The notes beneath the pieces were generated by a model. It saw only the letters and a list, made by a program, of their open reading frames with translations. It did not search any database and was not told the origin of the DNA. From Zygophlyctis sp. KS116 (lineage: Eukaryota; Fungi; Chytridiomycota), in NCBI GenBank assembly GCA_054661495.1, contig BAAFSQ010000124.1, forward strand, positions 1 through 28,450: DNA of 28,450 bases. The letters run 5' to 3'. The position numbers were made by a program, and so were the translations under genes. Below are positions 1 through 25,506 of the stretch, piece after piece (positions within the stretch are counted from its first letter, which is position 1; every line of letters begins with the position of its first letter).

Positions 1-210
1 GTCTAGATTACAGTTTTTGGAAACACAGTCATCATTCTTCCCACATTTTTCGCCAAGTGGAGCCCTGCATTTGCCATTATCACACACCAATCCTTGCATA
101 CAGCGCTTGTAAAAATTGCCATTCTCTATGCATGATCCACCCACTGGCACACCACAACTAACTACATTAAACAATGCAATAATTCCAACAGTCAAAAGAG
201 TAAGTTTCAT
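1..210 (-). CDS. Small secreted cysteine-rich protein (3' end runs off the window)
   Basis: Missing from the ORF track because there is no stop in the window. ATG at 210 reads MKLTLLTVGIIALFNVVSC-GVPVGGSCIENGNFYKRCMQGLVCDNGKCRAPLGEKCGKNDDCVSKNCNLD. Hydrophobic signal peptide followed by 7 more Cys in about 50 aa. Confidence 0.85.
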   Translation of the reverse strand, partial: MKLTLLTVGIIALFNVVSCGVPVGGSCIENGNFYKRCMQGLVCDNGKCRAPLGEKCGKNDDCVSKNCNLD

Positions 211-274
211 TTTAGAGATTTAGAAGAAAGAGATTTTAGTTTTTTTACAAGATGTCCCACCCAAAATCAGCTCA

Positions 275-355
275 TTTTATATCCGTTCCTGTCCCGCCGG
301 ATGACATAAGCGGATGACATAATCAAAGTGACGTATTTACTATGTATGACGTAAA
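275..355 (-). promoter_or_regulatory. Putative promoter of the Cys-rich gene: TATA box plus clustered bZIP-like sites
   Basis: TATAAAA on the minus strand at 275-281, about 65 bp upstream of the ATG. Tandem CGGATGACATAA x2 (298-322) and TGACGTA x2 (329-335, 347-353), resembling ATF/CREB/AP-1 sites. Confidence 0.45.
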
Positions 356-522
356 TCAATTTAATTAATAAAAGGAGAGATGGACTGTTGTAGTAGAGAT
401 CTAAATAATATTTTAAAGAGTAAATAAATGAATTAGTTTTTCAAGATTGTTATCATAGCCTTCTAGTTCATTCTTGAATTGAGATAATAATGCATTCATT
501 CAAATATCGGACAGATTGAGTT

Positions 523-2116
523 TTAAGAAGGCTGCAAATCTACAACCTCTCTGAATTTCCAAGTTTCCAAATCTCTTTGATACTCAACTCCGTTATGGAC
601 AACCATTATTAATCGAGGAAATTTTTCCAGATCTTCCATGTTTAAGTCTTGAGAATTATTCAATTCTAAGTATTCAAGGTTGGGGAATGCACCAATAAAT
701 TTTGAGATTTTGTTGAAATCTTCTTGAGAACGATTTCTTCCGCCTAATTTTATGACAAGACTCTTGAGATTATAAGAATATTCAGAAATGTCCGAAAATT
801 GAACATTTGAAAAACTAACTAATTCCAAATGTTCAAGTTTAGGAACCGATTTAAATAGATCATGAGGCACTGAATCTGAATTCAATCCGATTATACGGAT
901 CCTGGTAAGATTAGAAAATCTCTTCAGGTTAAATTTGTTGAGATATGAATGATAAGTAAAAGCCCAAGATTCTAAAGTGTTCCAATTTTCATACAGATCA
1001 TAATTATAAATAGAAATACCAGCCATCATTGTTAGATGCTTCATTTTGGGCAGTTTAACACTCCCATGCCACCCTGACCTGCCTGAATGAAAAGGTGCGT
1101 GCAATTCAAGTGTTTCCAACTGCTTCAGTTCATTTAAAACTTTTGAATTTTGATTCCAAGAAAAATTCTGTATATATAATTTTTTTAAATTGGTTGCATA
1201 TTTCATTTCTTCCATCAAAATATTATACCCCCGGAGTTCTGTCAACTGATTTCCTCGATAGAGTCTTCGAAGTTGGTCCTTGTCATAAATATCAGCAAGA
1301 CCAAGATCGAGCTTCTTCAAAGACTTTGCGTTATGAATTGATTCCCACATATTACGTAGTATATGCATTTTCTCAAATTCAAGCTGTTCTAACTGGCCTG
1401 CGGTTCCAATTATTGTCGAAACATATCGAGCCAAGAGCACTTTTTTATCTGACCAATTCAGATCTAAATCAGCTACTTTAAATTCTAGAATTTTTTTAAT
1501 GATCGAGCTATTGATTACAGAATCAAGGATTAAGGAAATCATATTCCCGTCTAGCCCACTGTCAGAGATAATTTCAATTCGTGATACATTGATTGGCGAT
1601 AAATTAGCAATGTAATCTCTATCAAGATTATTCCATCTGTTTGTAATCACCAATGTATCTATGGGTAGAACATCAATATATCTCCAGTCATAGTATGTAA
1701 ATGATTCAAAAAAATTAGGATATTCCTTGAAGCACTTTTGTATGATTTTAACACATTCTAGAGATATTCTTCCTTTAATGACCAGATGCGGATACAAAGA
1801 TGCAGGCTGACACTTTTTTTGTAAATCAACTATTGGAAGAAATAGTTTCAATGCAACTCCCATTTTCAGATATTCAGCAGTAGACAAATACTCCTTGAGA
1901 TGATGATGTAGAAGAGAAGAAAGATCTATTTTATCCATGGGATTTTGTGGTTTCATCAATGATTTTGGATTTGCAAGTGCTACAAGTGCATTATTAGTCT
2001 GCAACTGGTTCGGCAAACATTCTGTCAGCTGTAATAAACTATCATTAAGCCATTCTGCAATCATACCATGTCAATAGAAAGAATGCACTGAATAAATTCC
2101 ATTTCAAATAATTCAT
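523..2116 (-). CDS. Secreted LRR-like protein, tandem paralog A (~521 aa)
   Basis: ATG 2116, with a 28-nt intron at 2039-2066 (GTATGA...CTTAATGATAG) joining in frame to the 523..2064 ORF. N-terminus MNYLKWNLFSAFFLLTCLLQLTEC-LPNQ is signal-peptide-like. Repeated LxxLxL motifs (LKKLDL, LETLEL, LEHLEL, LEYLEL). Confidence 0.8.
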
Positions 2117-2145
2117 AACTGATAAGATCGAAAAAAATTTGTTGC
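1582..2145. repeat. 564-bp direct repeat, copy 1 (identical by eye to 3580-4143)
   Basis: Line-by-line comparison shows a constant 1998-bp offset and sharp boundaries. Covers the 5' UTR, exon 1, the intron and about 170 N-terminal codons. Confidence 0.93.
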
Positions 2146-2439
2146 GAAATTTTTACTTTTACTGAAATACTTATCTGCGCATCCTTTTTCTTCTTCCTAC
2201 ATGTTTAGAGAATCTTATAAAGATGCATTATGAAATTTAGAATGAGAAGATACCCAAATAAAATCCAGCGGACGTCCCAGTGGCTTTTTTAATTAATAGC
2301 GGATCGGTATTTACGGTCACTGAAGAATACTTTCCAAAATAACATATATTCTTTTAAAGTTTTACCAATCCAAATAAATCCTAATTTTCTCAATATTTGA
2401 GGCATAGACTTGAAATCATCGAAATATATTTTAGAATAA

Positions 2440-4114
2440 TTACTTGTCCGAAAGTATTTCCTGATTGTTTACAAAAAACTGCTGCATTCGGTCAAAAATC
2501 GGGCTAATAGAATCATCAGAGATCTGCAGGTTTTCAATGTTTTTAAATTTCCAAGTTATCAAATCCCTTCGATATTCAACGCCATTGTGCGTGACAACAT
2601 AAAGTCTAGGAGCTTTTTCAAGTTCATCAATATCAATTGGATAAACACAATCTATAATAAATGATTCAAGATATGGAAACTTGGCGATTACTTTCAAAAG
2701 CCGTCTCGTTTCTTCTTGAGATAGATATCCTCCCCATACCCTTATAACTAGACTCTTTAATATTTTAGAATATTTAGATATTTCAGAAAACCTTACGTTT
2801 GTATAACCATCCAGCTCTAAGTGCTCTAGTTTAGGGATTGATTTAAGCAGAAAATGAGGCAGTGAATTTGAATTCAGTCCCATGATATGAATTTTGCTGA
2901 GATTATTACATGACTGCAGATTTAAGCTATAGAGATTTGGATTAAAATAAACGGTTAAAGATTCCAAACTTTCCAATTTTTTAACCATAGCATAATCATG
3001 TATATGATCCATTGTTAAATGTTTCAGCTGCGGGAGTTTTAATTTTAGTGGTATTCCCAACCTGCCCAACAGATGCCAGAAAAGGTAGACGTGCAATTCT
3101 AAAGTTTCCAAATGCTGAAGTTCATTTAAAGCTTCAGAACTTTCATTCCAAAAAAACTCCTCGATACAAAGCTTCTTCAGATTAGTTGCATATCTTATCT
3201 CTTCATTCAAAATATTGAAACCACGAAGTTCTGTCAACTTGTTTTCCAGATACAATCTGCGAAGTTCCTCCTGATCATGACTTTCTTCAAGACCGAGGTC
3301 CAATTTCCTCAAAGACTGTGAATTGTGGATTGCCGCCCAAATTTCTCTAATTGCATTTGATGGTAGTTGAGGAATTTCAAATTCAAGTTTTTCCAAAACA
3401 ACGCCAAATTTGAGTACCTTGCAAACAATATCAGCAAAAAAAGATGATTCCGCATGCTCATTTCGGCATAATATTTTGAATTCACGAACCTTATCAAGAC
3501 GAACGGCATCTAACATGGTGAACTTGAGCAAGGAACGGAATCCTTCATCCATATCCCAGTCAGCGAACAATTCAATTCTTGATACATTGATTGGCGATAA
3601 ATTAGCAATGTAATCTCTATCAAGATTATTCCATCTGTTTGTAATCACCAATGTATCTATGGGTAGAACATCAATATATCTCCAGTCATAGTATGTAAAT
3701 GATTCAAAAAAATTAGGATATTCCTTGAAGCACTTTTGTATGATTTTAACACATTCTAGAGATATTCTTCCTTTAATGACCAGATGCGGATACAAAGATG
3801 CAGGCTGACACTTTTTTTGTAAATCAACTATTGGAAGAAATAGTTTCAATGCAACTCCCATTTTCAGATATTCAGCAGTAGACAAATACTCCTTGAGATG
3901 ATGATGTAGAAGAGAAGAAAGATCTATTTTATCCATGGGATTTTGTGGTTTCATCAATGATTTTGGATTTGCAAGTGCTACAAGTGCATTATTAGTCTGC
4001 AACTGGTTCGGCAAACATTCTGTCAGCTGTAATAAACTATCATTAAGCCATTCTGCAATCATACCATGTCAATAGAAAGAATGCACTGAATAAATTCCAT
4101 TTCAAATAATTCAT
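2440..4114 (-). CDS. Secreted LRR-like protein, tandem paralog B (~548 aa)
   Basis: ATG 4114 and intron 4037-4064. Same signal peptide and N-terminal region as paralog A. LRR region homologous but diverged. Confidence 0.8.
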
Positions 4115-4143
4115 AACTGATAAGATCGAAAAAAATTTGTTGC
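3580..4143. repeat. 564-bp direct repeat, copy 2
   Basis: Identical by eye to 1582-2145. Confidence 0.93.
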
Positions 4144-4487
4144 AAATCTTATTGAAATTGACATTGGAAACGCACATTTCAGGCATGATTATTAGTTTAC
4201 TGATTATTTTTTATGCTCATATACGGGCTACTCAGAAATGATCAGCGATACTGACGGCCGGAGTCTGTTACGTCCAGTCGTAGAACTCGTAAGAGTCTCC
4301 TTTTTTGCCTCGATTTTACGAAAAGAGTTTCGTTTCTGAATTTTAGAAAGTTGCTTTACTAGTTGAGAAGATCGGACATCATCAAAAGACAAAATTTCTG
4401 CCTGAAATATTTATATTTTTAAAGAACAATCATATTTAGAGAAACTTGCATCCCTTCTCCAATCCAGTTGTGAAGTCTATAGCGGGA

Positions 4488-12814: not shown

Positions 12815-15800
12815 TTAATTCGGACCTTTTATTTTTTTTAGAAAATCATCAATGTTTTCCTCTACTTCTTCCTCAATCTCCACACCTTCAATGTTCTGTG
12901 CATCAGTTGGGAATAAATCTAAAAGTACGTCGGTTGACATACTCTCAAGCCCAGCGTTTTCAGTGTTAATTACAGTATTTGCGATTGATAATTTGAATTT
13001 TTGTAGTCTAAAAAATTAAATTAAATATCATACCCCATAATCTTCTCTTCGATTGTTCCTTTGGTAATAAGTCTGTAGACATTTACTACCCGTTTCTGAC
13101 CTATTCGGTGCGCACGGTCCATGGCTTGTACGTCCTTCATTGGATTCCAATCATGCTCAAAAAATATAACAGTGTCAGCTCCTGTCAAATTCAGGCCCAG
13201 GCCTCCAACTGAAGTGGTCAACTAGTTTGTAAATTATCAAAATCCTACCACCAGAATGTCAATCGATGGGTCAGCATTAAATTGCGTTACAATTTCATGC
13301 CTTGCATCCAGACCAGTGCTACCATCCATTCGTAGCCATGATAAGCCTGGAATATGCGTTTCAAACAAATCTTTTTCGATGATATCAATCATGGTCTTCA
13401 ATTGTACAAAAATTAGAGCCCGATGGGGAGCGACTGCAGTGTCTTCTGACTTGAACGCTATTCCACATTGTGTTAGTAAATCTTTTAATGCCAATAGTTT
13501 AGGGGCGTGTCTAATATCATGTAGGCTTGATCCTTTTCTTTCGAGCTCTTGTTTGATCTGAGAATATTCTGGTTTTTCATTTGAAAGTACCAGTAATGGG
13601 TGATTGCATACCTTACGAAGATATTGAAGATTTTGAAATATATGAGTTCGTTTTTGGGGTTCTTCCTGCTCATGGACTTTTGAATCAGAATTGTCCTTTT
13701 CATACTCTTTGTAGAGTGAAACTTGCAACTCGCTCATATCACAATAGTAATCTTGGATAATTTTGGGTGGCAAATCGTCTAATACATCGTCTTTCATTCT
13801 CCTGAGAATAAAAGGAAGAACTTGCTTATGAAGTGCCTCAACAGCTAGAGCAGCCTGTTCTTGTTCTCTTCCAGAAGTTTTTGAATCTCTTGAAGCTAAA
13901 ATCGGTTTGCTGTATAGATCGTTAAATTCTTTTTCCGTTCCTAATAATCCAGGCATTAAAAAATCGAAGAGGGACCATAATTCTAAAACATTGTTTTGTA
14001 TAGGTGTTCCGGACAAGATTAAGCGATGAAAAGCCTGAACAGATTTGACTGCCTTTGTGAGTTTAGTCTTTGGATTTTTGACTATAAATATTATAAAAAA
14101 TTAAATACTAATATGCCCTTCATCAAGAACCATGTAGTTAAAAACAGCACTTCCACTAAAGCAAAACTCGAGATCAACTTTCAAAGTGTCATATGATGTG
14201 ATAACAACATCATAGAGAGAGAAATCTTTCACCATTTTCCGTCTATCATTTTTGTTTCCTATATGAAGGATTGGCTTTAAAAAAGGGGCAAATACTTGAA
14301 TTTCGCTCAGCCAATGTCTACATAATGAAGGAGGGCAAACAATGAGAGATGGTAAATCTCTAGAAGCAGCTGGAGTGCGATTCAGGGCTCTGTTAGCATG
14401 ATCAGAAGCGATTATACATATTGTCTGAAGAGTCTTTCCGAGTCCCATATCTTTTCATCAACGATATTCAATACTTACCGTCACATAAAATACCATGAAG
14501 TCCATATCTATTTAAAAAGGCCAGCCAATTCACTCCATCTTTTTGATACGGGCGCAGCTGAGCTTTAATGTCAACATTTAGCTCAAAATCTTCCACTTTT
14601 TCGGATCCAACAAGTTGTCCCATAAACTTCCTTTCTTCATCCTTCAATCTTATCATTTCCGGGCTAAATCCTTCTGGATTAGGAATTCCTTTTTCCAAAG
14701 GAACCAATTTCACTAGTTTAGCAAATATATTTGAGCATAAAAATCGAACATTAGAATCAGGATCAGACATTCTTCGCAGAATAGGTACAATCAAAAATAC
14801 TATATATGCCAAAACTTCATCTTTCATCATTTCCAAGATTTGAAAAATGGCCTCTGATGCTCCAAGGCGATTAACTAATTGATTGGTATCCGACATTAAA
14901 GGAAGAATTTCGTCGATAACAGCTTTCATTGAAGGAAAAGTTAAATGAAGGCACATAGTTCCCAAACAAGTAGATGCGCGATATCTAACTATCGAGAGAT
15001 TGTGGTGGCAAAGTTCACATATAATTTCCAGCAGCGGTTGGATTTTAGTATCGAGAATTGATCTTTCCAAAAAAGGAATAATAAATTGTAGTAATGTCAT
15101 AGCATTTAAAGTTTCGCTAGTTGAAGAGATTGATTTGGAATCAAAGGTTGTGAGTGGCAAACCAATTAAAGTCCACACGCTTGGTATTTCAATTAATAGA
15201 GCGGCACCAAACATTTTGCAAACTTTTGAAAAAACAGCGATTGATCCCCGAAATTCAATTGATTGGGCGGTTTGTAACTCTGCGTCTTCATCACCAGTAA
15301 GATCACCCATCAGCGAATTTTTTCTTGAGTTTTTCGTCTTTTTGCTTTTTTCACTCTTGATTTCTATCCCCAGCCGAAGTTTCTCGAGAGAAAGGATGGG
15401 AAATTGAACTTGATCTATCGGATCGTTTATAATGAATTCGGGATCATTACAAACCATATTTGATACTGTCTTAATTATTTTTTCATTTATAGCTAAAGCT
15501 TTACCTCCCTTTTTGGAATTATAATAAATTAATTCAGACATGGATTCCGCTGATCTTTGCTGGAAATATAATTCGGATTCCTTTTTTAAGCTATTTAGAA
15601 GAGACCTTATTACATGATTCTGCTTTCCAGGAAAATATTCGGTACAAACCAATAGACTTGCCATTGATGACATATATATGATTTCCATACTTTCTTGACG
15701 GGAGTAGAAATCACCAACTGCATTTTTGAGTTTTGTTTTCTTATTATTTAAATTTTCCAACATCTGAGATGTCGAAGATGTAGAATTCATCATTTTCATC

Positions 15801-18172
15801 AGATCGTCGAAAATATTGCTGACAATATTTTCTGCTATATGTACTGTAAAAATAGGTCCAAGATCTGAACTTACACGGTTTTGATCAAACGGCAGCAAAG
15901 GTAAATTCGGAACTTGACATCCTGCACTTGAAAAAAGTCTAAACAATGTATCTGTTTGCTGCCACACATCTACAAGGTGTGACTGAAGTTCGAAGAAAAG
16001 CGGCTGATTTCCACCATAAACAGAAGTAAGTTGATCATTTATCAAATATATCAGACCGTTAACAACCGGAAGATGTGATGAGTCTTTTGAAGGATACTTT
16101 TCATGAAAATTGAAAAACCAGTATTGAATAACTATAGCGACAAAAATGCGATTAAATACATAAGGACTGTTTATACAATTTGTAAGAATTTGAGAGACTG
16201 ACTGGATTGATAATTCAGTGGTATTTGTGTCAAATATATGAAATAATAATTGCCCAAGAGCCTTAGAGGCAATTACGCGATTAAACATCACCTGCGATCT
16301 CGAAACAACAGTGAAGTCTTGCATCGCCATTGCTTTATCATGAGGAGATATATTAATACCCTCATTACCTTGAACTTTTCGAACATTTCCTATTATAAAA
16401 CGACCCAACTTTTGAGCATTCGATTTTTCAGATGTATAATAAATGAACTGTCCAGGATCTATCCGTGAACCTAGCGGATACATTAGCATGGTAAAAAACC
16501 CCGGCATAAATGAAGAAAAATATGAATACAAATCATCGGATAATATGTTGGCGTTTAAGGCCAAAACATTAACTATTTCGTTCCATATTTTAAGTGAAAG
16601 TTCAACAATTTCGGGCTTCTCTTCTAGGAAAAAATTCTGAAATAGTAAATGCAGTAAATCAGGAGTTATCCAAGAAATGCTTGATCTTGAATTAAACTTT
16701 AGAGATGCAAATGTAGACAATGACTCTAATATAGAAGCTCTTGCAGAAGATATAGCATGCCTAAAAAAAGGATAAATTTGTGGTACTAAATGTGATAGAA
16801 AATCACAGGTTTCATTTTGAATAATGATAGATATTTCTGGTCGAGTTATTAATTTGGAAATTAAGTCCATAATTGAAACTGTGGCAGAAGTCAAATCATC
16901 TAATTCATGCAAACTGTTCCATAAAGGAATGAGTATTGTATCAAAAATTTTAGGTCCAGAGAATATTCTAACAATATGATCTACAATTGGCACCAAAGTG
17001 AGTGCAGCTACAACACGGACATCATCATTCGCATCCAGAAGGCCATCCAGAATAGTTGAAAGAATCGGAGAGAAATCACCATCTTCACCTTTAAACAAAA
17101 ATTCCAATAAATCGGTCCTAACAGCAAGTATATATTTGAGCCCAGTAAATGCAGCTAAACGAATTCCCCAAGATTGACCGACAAGTTCCGAAGAGATTTT
17201 AGATTCTCTAATTAAAACCAATAATCCTTTAGAAATAATGTCAAAAATAAGTTCTTTTGAAGCAAATTGCGATACAACCCCTAGAACCTGAGCAGATACT
17301 TCCCTTACAGGGATTTGGGGATTATCACCTACAAAATCAGTAAATTTATCTAATGCCAAAACGCATAATAGCCTAACTGATAGATCTCTACACCAATCTT
17401 GATGAATTTTAATATTCTTCTCGTCTTCAAAATCATCCATTTTCCCCATACTCCCCCCTAAATTCCTTAAAATCTCACGTAGAGCCAAAGCTGATCCATG
17501 ACGCACTTCCCAAAAAGGAGAAAAGAGCTGTTTTAACAATTTTTGAATCAGATATTGCATAGGATGTTGATTTTCAGGAATTTGAAATTCCAATTCCTTT
17601 TTATATGCAACAACCACCTTTTCATTTTCAATTTTGATCCTTTTTGTTGATTGATTTGAGCTTTTTTCTTTTCTCTTTGCCCGATTTCTTTCTCTTGCAG
17701 ACATTTCTGGCACATCTTCCTTTTTCAAAGACTCTTCCTTCAAGTCTGCGACATCAACCAACCCATCTATGATCAGTAAAATACTAATAATCGTACCTAT
17801 TTCTAGACCAAGTTTTTCCTTTATAATTTTTTTTTGTTCGTCCGCTTCCATTATAAACGCCTCGTACTCTTCGCCGGGACTTTCCAACAATGGAATTCCA
17901 TTTTTCAACTCTTCAAAGTCTGAAAACTCTAAAAATTCAAAATCTCTCAACTGCCAAATCACAGATACCTGCATGCTTCCTAGAGTCATTGCCGTCTGAG
18001 TTCTAGTGTCCCAACTCTTAAATCCCAAAAGTGGCACAATTTTGACCAGCAAAGAAGCCAGATCCTGAGGCCTATTATTGACAATCTGTGCAAGTTGAAT
18101 TGATGCATTTCTCTTGATTCCACTAGACGATCCCTGGTCCAACAATACAATTAAACGATCCAATCGACTCAT
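12815..18172 (-). CDS. MOT1: TBP-associated Snf2-family ATPase Mot1/BTAF1 (~1739 aa)
   Basis: [15 protein letters not shown] start and HEAT repeats. ATPase motifs [42 protein letters not shown] and [11 protein letters not shown]. Introns 17767-17796, 14451-14478, 14082-14108, 13222-13248 and 13008-13033. Confidence 0.97.
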
Positions 18173-18394
18173 ACAATGAAAGTTTAGGTCCTGGTTTTGC
18201 AAAGTATCACTAGTCCCTAATGACCATTATTAAAGGCCATTTTTCTATGATTAGATTGGATATAAATAATTATAATTATAAGCCTCTTGTACTCTAGTCA
18301 TCTATGAGAATATCTAAACACGAGGGTGAAATTCGTAGTGTCCGAAATCTACACAATTGCATAACTTGCATTTCTAACCTAAACTTGAACCAAA

Positions 18395-24169: not shown

Positions 24170-24847
24170 ATGGAAAATCTGTTCTCATCTCTACTTGGTA
24201 AAAAACCAACGCCAGAAGAACAAGTATGATTTATTTACTAACAATAGGTGAAGAAATGGAGATCTCTCCTTCGCTCACAAGAAAGAGAACTGGACAAGAC
24301 AATTCGTGGAATAGACTCTGAGGAAATCAAGACAAAGAGACTTGTCAAGGCTGCAGCTAAAAGGGGAGACAAGGCATCTTGTGGGATACTCTCAAAGGAA
24401 ATCATCCGTGCTAGAAAAGCAAAGGATAGAATAATTACTTCAAAAGCAACTCTAAATTCTTTAATTTTAACAATACAACAACAAGTTTCAACTGCTAAAG
24501 TAGCAAATTCACTTGGAGAGAGTGCTCAAATAATGTCTCTAGTGAATTCTCTAGTTAAATTACCAGAAATTTCTTCTTCAATACAAGAATTATCAAAGGA
24601 AATGCTAAAGGCAGGAATTATTGAAGAAATGATTCAAGAGACTATAGAGTTTACAGACTCTGAAGATATTGAAGAAGCTGCATCAGAAGAAGTAGATAAA
24701 GTCTTGTTTGAGTTGACGGATGGACTATTCGGACAAACTAGCGTTCCAGATAAACCATTACCAAGTGTAATTTATTTTTTTTAAATTTTTTAGGAGGAAA
24801 CAAGAGAATCAGAGCTATCAAAGAGACTGACTGCCTTGAAATCTTGA
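24170..24847 (+). CDS. VPS24: ESCRT-III subunit Vps24/CHMP3 (~208 aa)
   Basis: PEEQVKKWR...ERELD, LVKLPEI, LSKEMLKAGIIEEMI, EEVDKVLFELT and C-terminal MIM KRLTALKS. Introns 24224-24247 and 24767-24793. Confidence 0.93.
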
Positions 24848-24853
24848 TCTAAA

Positions 24854-25506
24854 TTACTTTATATCTATCTAGTAAATTTCAGAAAAAAAGTACACTTTGA
24901 CATAAACTTTCGATGAAAGTCTGACCTTAACAGATCATTTATAAATCTCTTTTTTGGTTTATCTTCTACGACTGCTTGATTCTTGAAAATCACATCATCA
25001 TCCCATCTTTTTTTAATTTTAAAGTCTGAAGAGATCAATGGATTACCAGAAATTGCATCTTGTTCTCTCTGCAGTCTTTTAGATTTTTCCTCTTCATCTT
25101 CCTTTTGAAGAGCTTCTTCAGCCCTTTCTCTTTTTATAGCTTCTAATTCTCTCATTAATGCTTCAGTCTCATCTTCCGACTCTTCCGACTCTTGAGAGTC
25201 TGAAAGAGATTCATCAGCGTCCAAATCCTGAATTTCTTGTAAAAAAATTCTTCTCTTTTCCAAAGATCCACCTTGAATTTCCGAGAATCTTTTCCCTAGT
25301 ACAGTAGACTCTTTTTCATTTAATTCCTTTAGTAAATCCTTGTTTTGGACTTCTTCAACTGAATTCTGCCCTTGCCCTCTATATTTTATTTTGAATTCAG
25401 ACTTTAAATCCAGATTCAGAACTACTCTTGAAGCCAGCTGATTATTATCTCTGAGAGAGAAACCTCCCATGGCAGGAAGGAAAGTTGGTCTTGCAGCTGT
25501 TGTCAT
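24854..25506 (-). CDS. CWC15: Spliceosomal NTC-associated protein Cwc15 (~207 aa)
   Basis: MTTAARPT, KKRWDDDVIFKNQA, FINDLLRSDFHRKFM. A 29-nt intron at 24865-24893 restores the canonical KYIK* end. Confidence 0.95.

Follow-up and report, generated by a model that had tools for sequence, protein, structure and literature searches.

A recently homogenized 564-bp patch, probably a gene-conversion tract, at the 5′ ends of two old tandem leucine-rich repeat genes in the chytrid Zygophlyctis sp. KS116

Sequence exchange occurs in plant leucine-rich repeat (LRR) resistance-gene clusters. Here we describe a pair of tandem LRR-like genes, A and B, from the chytrid Zygophlyctis sp. KS116, whose 5′ ends share an identical patch of 564 bp. 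The window, by which we mean the whole stretch of DNA analyzed, comprises 28,450 nucleotides (nt) of contig BAAFSQ010000124.1 (assembly GCA_054661495.1; positions 1 to 28,450, forward strand). Interlocus conversion tracts of 50 to several hundred base pairs have been published, with efficient conversion at >80% identity and ~200 bp of near-identity (PMC3924818); the 564-bp patch lies within that length range. Interlocus conversion between tandem paralogs leaves bounded identity that includes silent and non-coding sites, as we see here. Mosaic divergence in tandem paralogues (bioRxiv 10.1101/2025.10.29.685298) is a close known case for the patch shared by A and B.

Three groups of described proteins invite comparison with the gene products. 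Crinkler (CRN) effectors join a constant N-terminus to a variable C-terminus and are superficially like A and B, but here there are only two genes, their C-termini are homologous, the junction falls in mid-repeat and the N-terminal part is not common to the paralogs of relatives. The GALA/RipG effectors of Ralstonia carry an export signal, an F-box-like part and an LRR part, as does the family of A and B; they use a type III secretion signal, whereas the A/B family has a predicted eukaryotic endoplasmic reticulum signal peptide. In FBXL2 and FBXL17, the LRR solenoid comes directly after a helical segment at the N-terminus, an arrangement common to our model of A. Unlike these adaptors of the Skp1–cullin–F-box (SCF) ubiquitin ligase, the A/B family carries predicted signal peptides and gives no Pfam F-box match at threshold in A or B, and its link to Skp1 is only putative.

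Direct comparison of positions 1582–2145 with 3580–4143 reveals zero mismatches over 564 bp, at an offset of 1998 bp. Within the patch lie 29 bp of 5′ flank or untranslated region (UTR), the predicted 50-nt exon 1, a predicted 28-nt intron and, from exon 2, the leading 457 nt, so that a first-pass annotation of this DNA was correct in reporting identity across the 5′ UTR, the intron and synonymous sites. In 50-bp windows, identity is only 41% on the 5′ side of the patch and drops to 58% and then 40% on the 3′ side. In the long open reading frame (ORF), codon 161 is the last of the identical nucleotide stretch. A and B first differ at Arg162, by a synonymous CGA/AGA change, and the proteins stay identical up to Glu164, which places the abrupt end described earlier (...NVSRIE) at that residue. 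At the junction of the patch, both genes are in frame and in homologous register.

We aligned the two duplication units (491–2200 and 2483–4198) with MAFFT. The next-longest concordant run between them is 13 bp. When the 478 discordant columns were permuted 10,000 times, no run was longer than 45, and an analytic bound puts the probability of a 564-bp run at ~1e-79. The GENECONV-type run-length check that the first-pass annotation had proposed thus sets 564 against a permutation maximum of 45, and the identity of the patch is beyond chance. A genome-wide copy count had been proposed as well: a DNA search of the assembly (12.7 Mb, 1175 contigs) found two copies only, both at this locus. With only two copies in the genome, a transposon is ruled out as the origin of the patch. 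Word searches with the patch alone and with a junction-spanning piece gave no match, and the whole protein retrieved one relative; two metagenome DNA scans for an ortholog of the patch also gave no match. By exact look-up, the ORFs of A and B are absent from the protein collection.

Outside the patch, the two genes have diverged deeply. They are 47% identical in amino acid sequence over 351 residues, in agreement with an earlier estimate by eye that the LRR parts were about half identical, and 62% identical in nucleotide sequence; third codon positions are 50% identical, compared with 29% expected from composition. Pairwise rates for the LRR halves are ~0.41 nonsynonymous substitutions per site (dN) and 1.36–1.61 synonymous substitutions per site (dS, near saturation), which gives a dN/dS ratio (ω) of ~0.25–0.30. 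By window, ω ranges from 0.17 to 0.43 except at codons 162–245. This stretch, directly after the patch, is the fastest-evolving part of the gene, with a dN of 0.73 and an ω of 0.47 by the Nei–Gojobori (NG86) method that is unstable by maximum likelihood. These rates indicate that the LRR halves are under purifying selection overall. The dN/dS check had been suggested in connection with diversifying LRR halves, and its outcome goes against that part of the earlier proposal.

Within the patch, ~165 near-neutral sites are available for comparison, and none differs: ~97 synonymous sites in exon 2, 28 intronic sites, 29 upstream sites and ~11 synonymous sites in exon 1, the last number being our own estimate. 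Zero changes at these sites, set against a dS of 1.4–1.6 outside, make the duplication at least ~75 times older than the patch. The identity cannot be put down to constraint on the protein, because relatives are only 25–45% identical to A in the N-terminal part (residues 47–161); in the LRR part they are 18–31% identical. Without homogenization, A and B would be expected to show ~60–65% identity in the part covered by the patch.

The phylogeny of the LRR halves bears on the age of the duplication. In a maximum-likelihood tree, A groups with the metagenomic sequences P0007 and P0151 (support 99/98; 87% amino acid and 93% nucleotide identity), and B forms a long separate branch that is unresolved against P0005. 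The LRR part of A (523–1581) is 93% identical in nucleotide sequence to the lake-metagenome contig L012; this contig and L039, both from the sister population, cover only the 3′ half of the A ortholog. Because the LRR half of A sits with P0007 and P0151, far from B, the duplication is old.

These observations are best explained if the patch is an interlocus (non-allelic) gene-conversion tract between old tandem paralogs, a reading that we hold with fair confidence and that upholds the earlier suggestion of recent gene conversion or recombination for a bounded patch identical at silent sites. Genes A and B are old tandem duplicates within a small LRR family. A break in one paralog would have been repaired with the neighboring paralog as template, and the 564 bp at the 5′ end of one copy, starting 29 bp ahead of the start codon and stopping just before the Arg162 codon, would recently have been overwritten with the sequence of the other. 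A single unequal crossover leaves one whole side identical and therefore does not fit a two-sided patch. The patch has diverged sequence on either side, keeps both register and frame, lacks a third copy and shows no junction scars, which argues for conversion; we infer conversion rather than a double crossover. The flanks are only 40–60% identical, too low for efficient homologous repair, so the 5′ part has probably been homogenized repeatedly, as local concerted evolution, rather than once. The usual identity requirement of ~80%, which the flanks of A and B fall far below, suggests either such long-term local homogenization or a rare event.

Several points weigh against this interpretation. 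With flanks this dissimilar, one conversion event alone is unlikely on mechanistic grounds, and the repeated homogenization put in its place is only a proposal. No orthologous patch from a sister strain was found, and the tree covers the flank alone, where A is placed away from B. Some local diversification may have taken place at codons 162–245. Finally, the exact 564-bp repeats lie 1.4 kb apart in a structure that is given here as assembled.

This last point bears on the possibility that the 5′ ends were made identical by consensus building or polishing, or that one copy of the patch was misplaced in assembly. The assembly is fragmented into 1175 contigs, and this contig starts within another duplicated segment. 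We nonetheless regard such an artefact as unlikely, since repeats make assemblers collapse or break sequence but are not created by them, reading frame and homologous register are kept at both junctions, and the flanks fall to 40–58% identity within 50 bp. Polishing, for its part, homogenizes only near-identical sequence and would still imply conversion, only slightly older. In a one-off rearrangement, one gene would have received a new 5′ end through a partial duplication in the recent past or through a double unequal crossover. This would leave the same bounded identical patch as conversion and would suit a duplication-prone locus, as window positions 1–649 are copied on another contig (C86) at 85.6% identity. 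It would, however, need two precisely homologous breakpoints, both of which conversion gives in one step, and the locus has neither target-site or junction scars nor an extra gene copy; we consider it very improbable.

Both genes lie on the minus strand, with long ORFs at 523–2064 (A, 513 amino acids) and 2440–4062 (B, 540 amino acids). Upstream of the long ORF of A, the ATG at 2116 opens the 50-nt exon, which encodes MNYLKWNLFSAFFLLT, and the intron GTATGATTGCAGAATGGCTTAATGATAG (2039–2066) is of the GT-AG type in phase 2 (Table 1). Once it is removed, the split codon TG|T is completed and the frame continues into ...LLQLTECLPNQ of the long ORF. The spliced products would be 521 (A) and 548 (B) amino acids long. 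The predicted protein parts encoded by exon 2 of A are a disordered linker, three helices that make up an F-box-like segment, and an LRR solenoid; B has a 27-residue C-terminal extension that is absent from A and common to the metagenomic relative P0005. A 12-nt alternative intron, GTATGATTGCAG, was rejected because its frame and size are wrong, and the 28-nt version fits.

Table 1. Coordinates of the patch, the predicted parts of genes A and B and the third family member (window positions unless another contig is given).
Feature	Position	Strand	Basis or remark
Identical patch, gene A copy	1582..2145	-	Exact 564-bp match to 3580-4143
Identical patch, gene B copy	3580..4143	-	Exact 564-bp match to 1582-2145
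Gene A exon 1 (predicted)	2067..2116	-	MNYLKWNLFSAFFLLT + 2 nt of split Cys codon; translation
Gene A intron (predicted), 28 nt, GTATGA...CTTAATGATAG	2039..2066	-	Read from sequence
Gene A exon 2, including stop	523..2038	-	ORF, AF2 model, LRR matches
Gene B exon 1 (predicted), identical to gene A exon 1	4065..4114	-	
Gene B intron (predicted), 28 nt, same sequence as the gene A intron	4037..4064	-	
Gene B exon 2, including stop	2440..4036	-	
Diverged LRR-coding part, gene A	523..1581	-	
Diverged LRR-coding part, gene B	2440..3579	-	
Third family member	L010:1760-3700 (contig C187)	-	Signal-peptide exon, 27-nt intron, C-terminal hydrophobic segment

Introns of this size recur in the genome. 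A Mot1 gene in the same window has introns of 28 nt (14451–14478) and 27 nt (14082–14108) on the minus strand, both needed to restore the motifs GILCDDMGLGKT and DEGHIIKN; a Skp1 gene has one of 25 nt (L030:1074–1098) and the family member on contig C187 one of 27 nt (L010 ~3582–3608). These mini-introns begin with GTA(A/T) and carry a TAAT- or TGAT-like motif 4–10 nt before the AG. The A/B intron resembles those of Mot1, Skp1 and C187 in size and in its TAAT-like branch motif. In a related metagenomic gene (L036:2260–2294), the intron is 35 nt long and contains TACTAAC. Splicing of the 28-nt intron of A and B is inferred from the sequence. Since introns of 25–28 nt are normal in this genome, the intron is credible, which in turn favors the proposal that the products are secreted. 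Equally credible, and conserved in relatives, is the placing of a signal-peptide exon ahead of the 28-nt intron. The 5′ UTR and intron of the first-pass annotation are therefore retained in our gene models: the intron is GT-AG, 28 nt long, joined in frame and of normal size for the genome.

We judged signal peptides by eye, exon by exon. All five members with a visible 5′ end have a signal-peptide-like N-terminus. In A and B, MNYLKWNLFSAFFLLT, after which comes Cys-LLQL, looks like a signal peptide's n- and h-regions. The C187 protein starts with MCLRLFCGLLSFFILLNSANA|IG, after which comes a 27-nt phase-2 intron, and the P0004 gene has a 32-nt exon encoding MNTRIINLIL, a 35-nt phase-2 intron with TACTAAC and then SLLLASVGA. 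The N-termini of P0006 and P0011 are MNRLLLVLCLFLSINTTQIHG, from an intron-free gene, and MRFFSSLLFASTITIP, respectively. With a signal-peptide-like start in every relative whose 5′ end can be seen, the earlier description of the genes as secreted gains support, and the products of the family probably enter the secretory pathway.

The family is small and lineage-restricted, comprising a few freshwater fungal sequences. A profile search covering 1.8 billion representatives yielded few true relatives (P0002, P0001, P0004, P0006 and P0011, with the fragments P0005, P0007, P0019 and P0023), and the remaining matches were generic LRR proteins. The third member in this genome, on contig C187, is 31% identical over residues 43–112, and P0002 is a C187-like protein from the sister strain. 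In the C187 protein, P0002 and P0004, the C-terminus carries a hydrophobic segment and then a short acidic tail (EEEPNIDK in C187), as would suit a membrane anchor; A, B, P0001 and P0006 lack this segment. The arrangement suggests that C187 encodes a type I membrane-anchored form of the family; P0002 and P0004 have the same layout.

The fold of the family was assessed with exon 1 and exon 2 handled separately, rather than as a joined protein, in both searches and structure prediction. Pfam LRR models gave only sub-threshold matches. A family profile matched LRR proteins in the Protein Data Bank at 2e-7, all of them generic LRRs. An AlphaFold2 (AF2) model built from a 12-sequence alignment (pLDDT 74.7, pTM 0.73) replaced a single-sequence model that was too poor to use (pLDDT 50). 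In this model, residues 1–46 are disordered, helices span 48–56, 62–71 and 73–85, and ~17 LRR strands run from residue 93 to the C-terminus. On this model, the three helices and LRRs 1 to 3 fall within the patch, which ends inside the fourth LRR strand (162–166). Foldseek and VIA-align matches to the model are all LRR proteins. The best VIA-align match is FBXL2 (Z 20.3, root-mean-square deviation 4.8, 346 aligned residues), followed by three FBXL17 entries (Z 18.6–19.2), and these FBXL matches exceed generic LRRs by only ~1–2 Z units. The LRR domain of RipG4 matches the model of A at Z 16.3, no better than generic LRRs. Profile, predicted fold and structural matches thus all agree with the first reading of these genes as LRR-like.

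The helical segment carries an F-box-like pattern, L..LL..YL...(D/E)Y..(L/M)G.VSK.F. No match to the F-box Pfam models (PF00646 and PF12937) exceeds the threshold in A, B or C187. At the homologous segment, sub-threshold PF12937 matches occur in P0004 (E 0.016, 15.4 bits; cut-off 24.3) and P0023 (E 0.18). A six-frame scan of the genome with PF12937 found 47 places, 30 of them above the cut-off, and A and B are not included. Comparison by hhalign with 14 F-boxes of the same genome aligned the same place (P 0.0014), at only 18% probability. Language-model look-alikes at 0.90–0.92 are F-box clusters, which we treat as a lead only. A complex prediction for residues 40–200 of A with the Skp1 of this genome, supplied as two exon chains, scored 0.26 (mark 0.34). 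The genome has two Skp1 genes, on contigs C139 and C126; the C139 copy is short (141 amino acids) and has two exons. Together, the sequence comparisons weakly suggest that the helical segment is F-box-like, and we have not filed the family under F-box. The predicted parts of its proteins, in order, are a signal peptide, a short linker, three helices that make up an F-box-like segment, and an LRR solenoid resembling that of FBXL proteins.

Least probable of all is the proposal of the first-pass annotation that A and B belong to a Crinkler-like constant/variable effector system, in which a secretion and adaptor cassette is actively joined by recombination to LRR halves that diversify: both the F-box-like segment and the secretion signal do lie inside the patch, the 80 codons after it are the most diverged part of the gene, and its end coincides with a conserved (L/V)SRIE, a motif also kept in the closest relatives, but the 12.7-Mb assembly holds two copies of the cassette and no other partner for it, the C-terminal halves are homologous LRRs rather than unrelated modules, the junction is predicted to fall within LRR 4 and not at a domain border, the N-terminal part is ordinary diverging family sequence (the paralogs P0001 and P0006, from one metagenome, are ~40% identical there) and the overall ω of the LRR halves is 0.25–0.30. 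The patch is not a mobile module. A cassette lacking other partners and LRRs under purifying selection are the two outcomes that the first-pass annotation had itself set as failing the shuffling reading, and both are what we observe.

The surroundings of the two genes include a second duplication. Window positions 1–649 and L011:3100–3749 on contig C86 form an inverted segmental duplicate with 85.6% identity over 658 bp, which reaches the contig start. The copy on C86 holds the last ~42 codons of gene A as a truncated fragment with stops around it; intergenic DNA and the beginning of a small gene belong to the duplicate as well. C86 thus carries a 3′ pseudo-fragment of the gene A family. At window positions 1–210, on the minus strand, a gene for a small cysteine-rich protein with a signal peptide (MKLTLLTVGIIALFNVVSC...) is cut by the contig end. 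A full paralog of 132 amino acids lies on C86 (L008:1949–2347), with the spacing C..G.C/N..C.S..C repeated. Elsewhere in the window lie housekeeping genes of the usual eukaryotic kind, namely a Mot1/BTAF1-type SNF2 ATPase gene (13237–18202, minus strand) with HEAT repeats, DUF3535, SNF2 and helicase C domains and at least two mini-introns, a Snf7-family gene (24248–24784) and Cwc15 (24865–25506). With these genes and its spliceosomal introns, the contig is fungal-like and not of human origin.

As a gene-conversion tract, the patch would be an ordinary outcome of recombination between neighboring duplicates, and the family is more notable than the patch. The patch does serve as a practical warning, because whole-gene trees or dN/dS estimates on the A/B pair would be wrong. 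A signal peptide ahead of an F-box-like segment and an FBXL-like LRR solenoid is an unusual combination that could point to exported ubiquitin-ligase adaptors. One speculative extension, which we think unlikely, is that these are secreted F-box/LRR proteins of a lake chytrid that are delivered to the host or prey cell and borrow its SCF ubiquitin ligase, with repeated conversion keeping the export and Skp1-docking end uniform and the LRR target-binding ends being kept apart. If true, the GALA/RipG effectors of bacteria would have a eukaryotic counterpart in this family.

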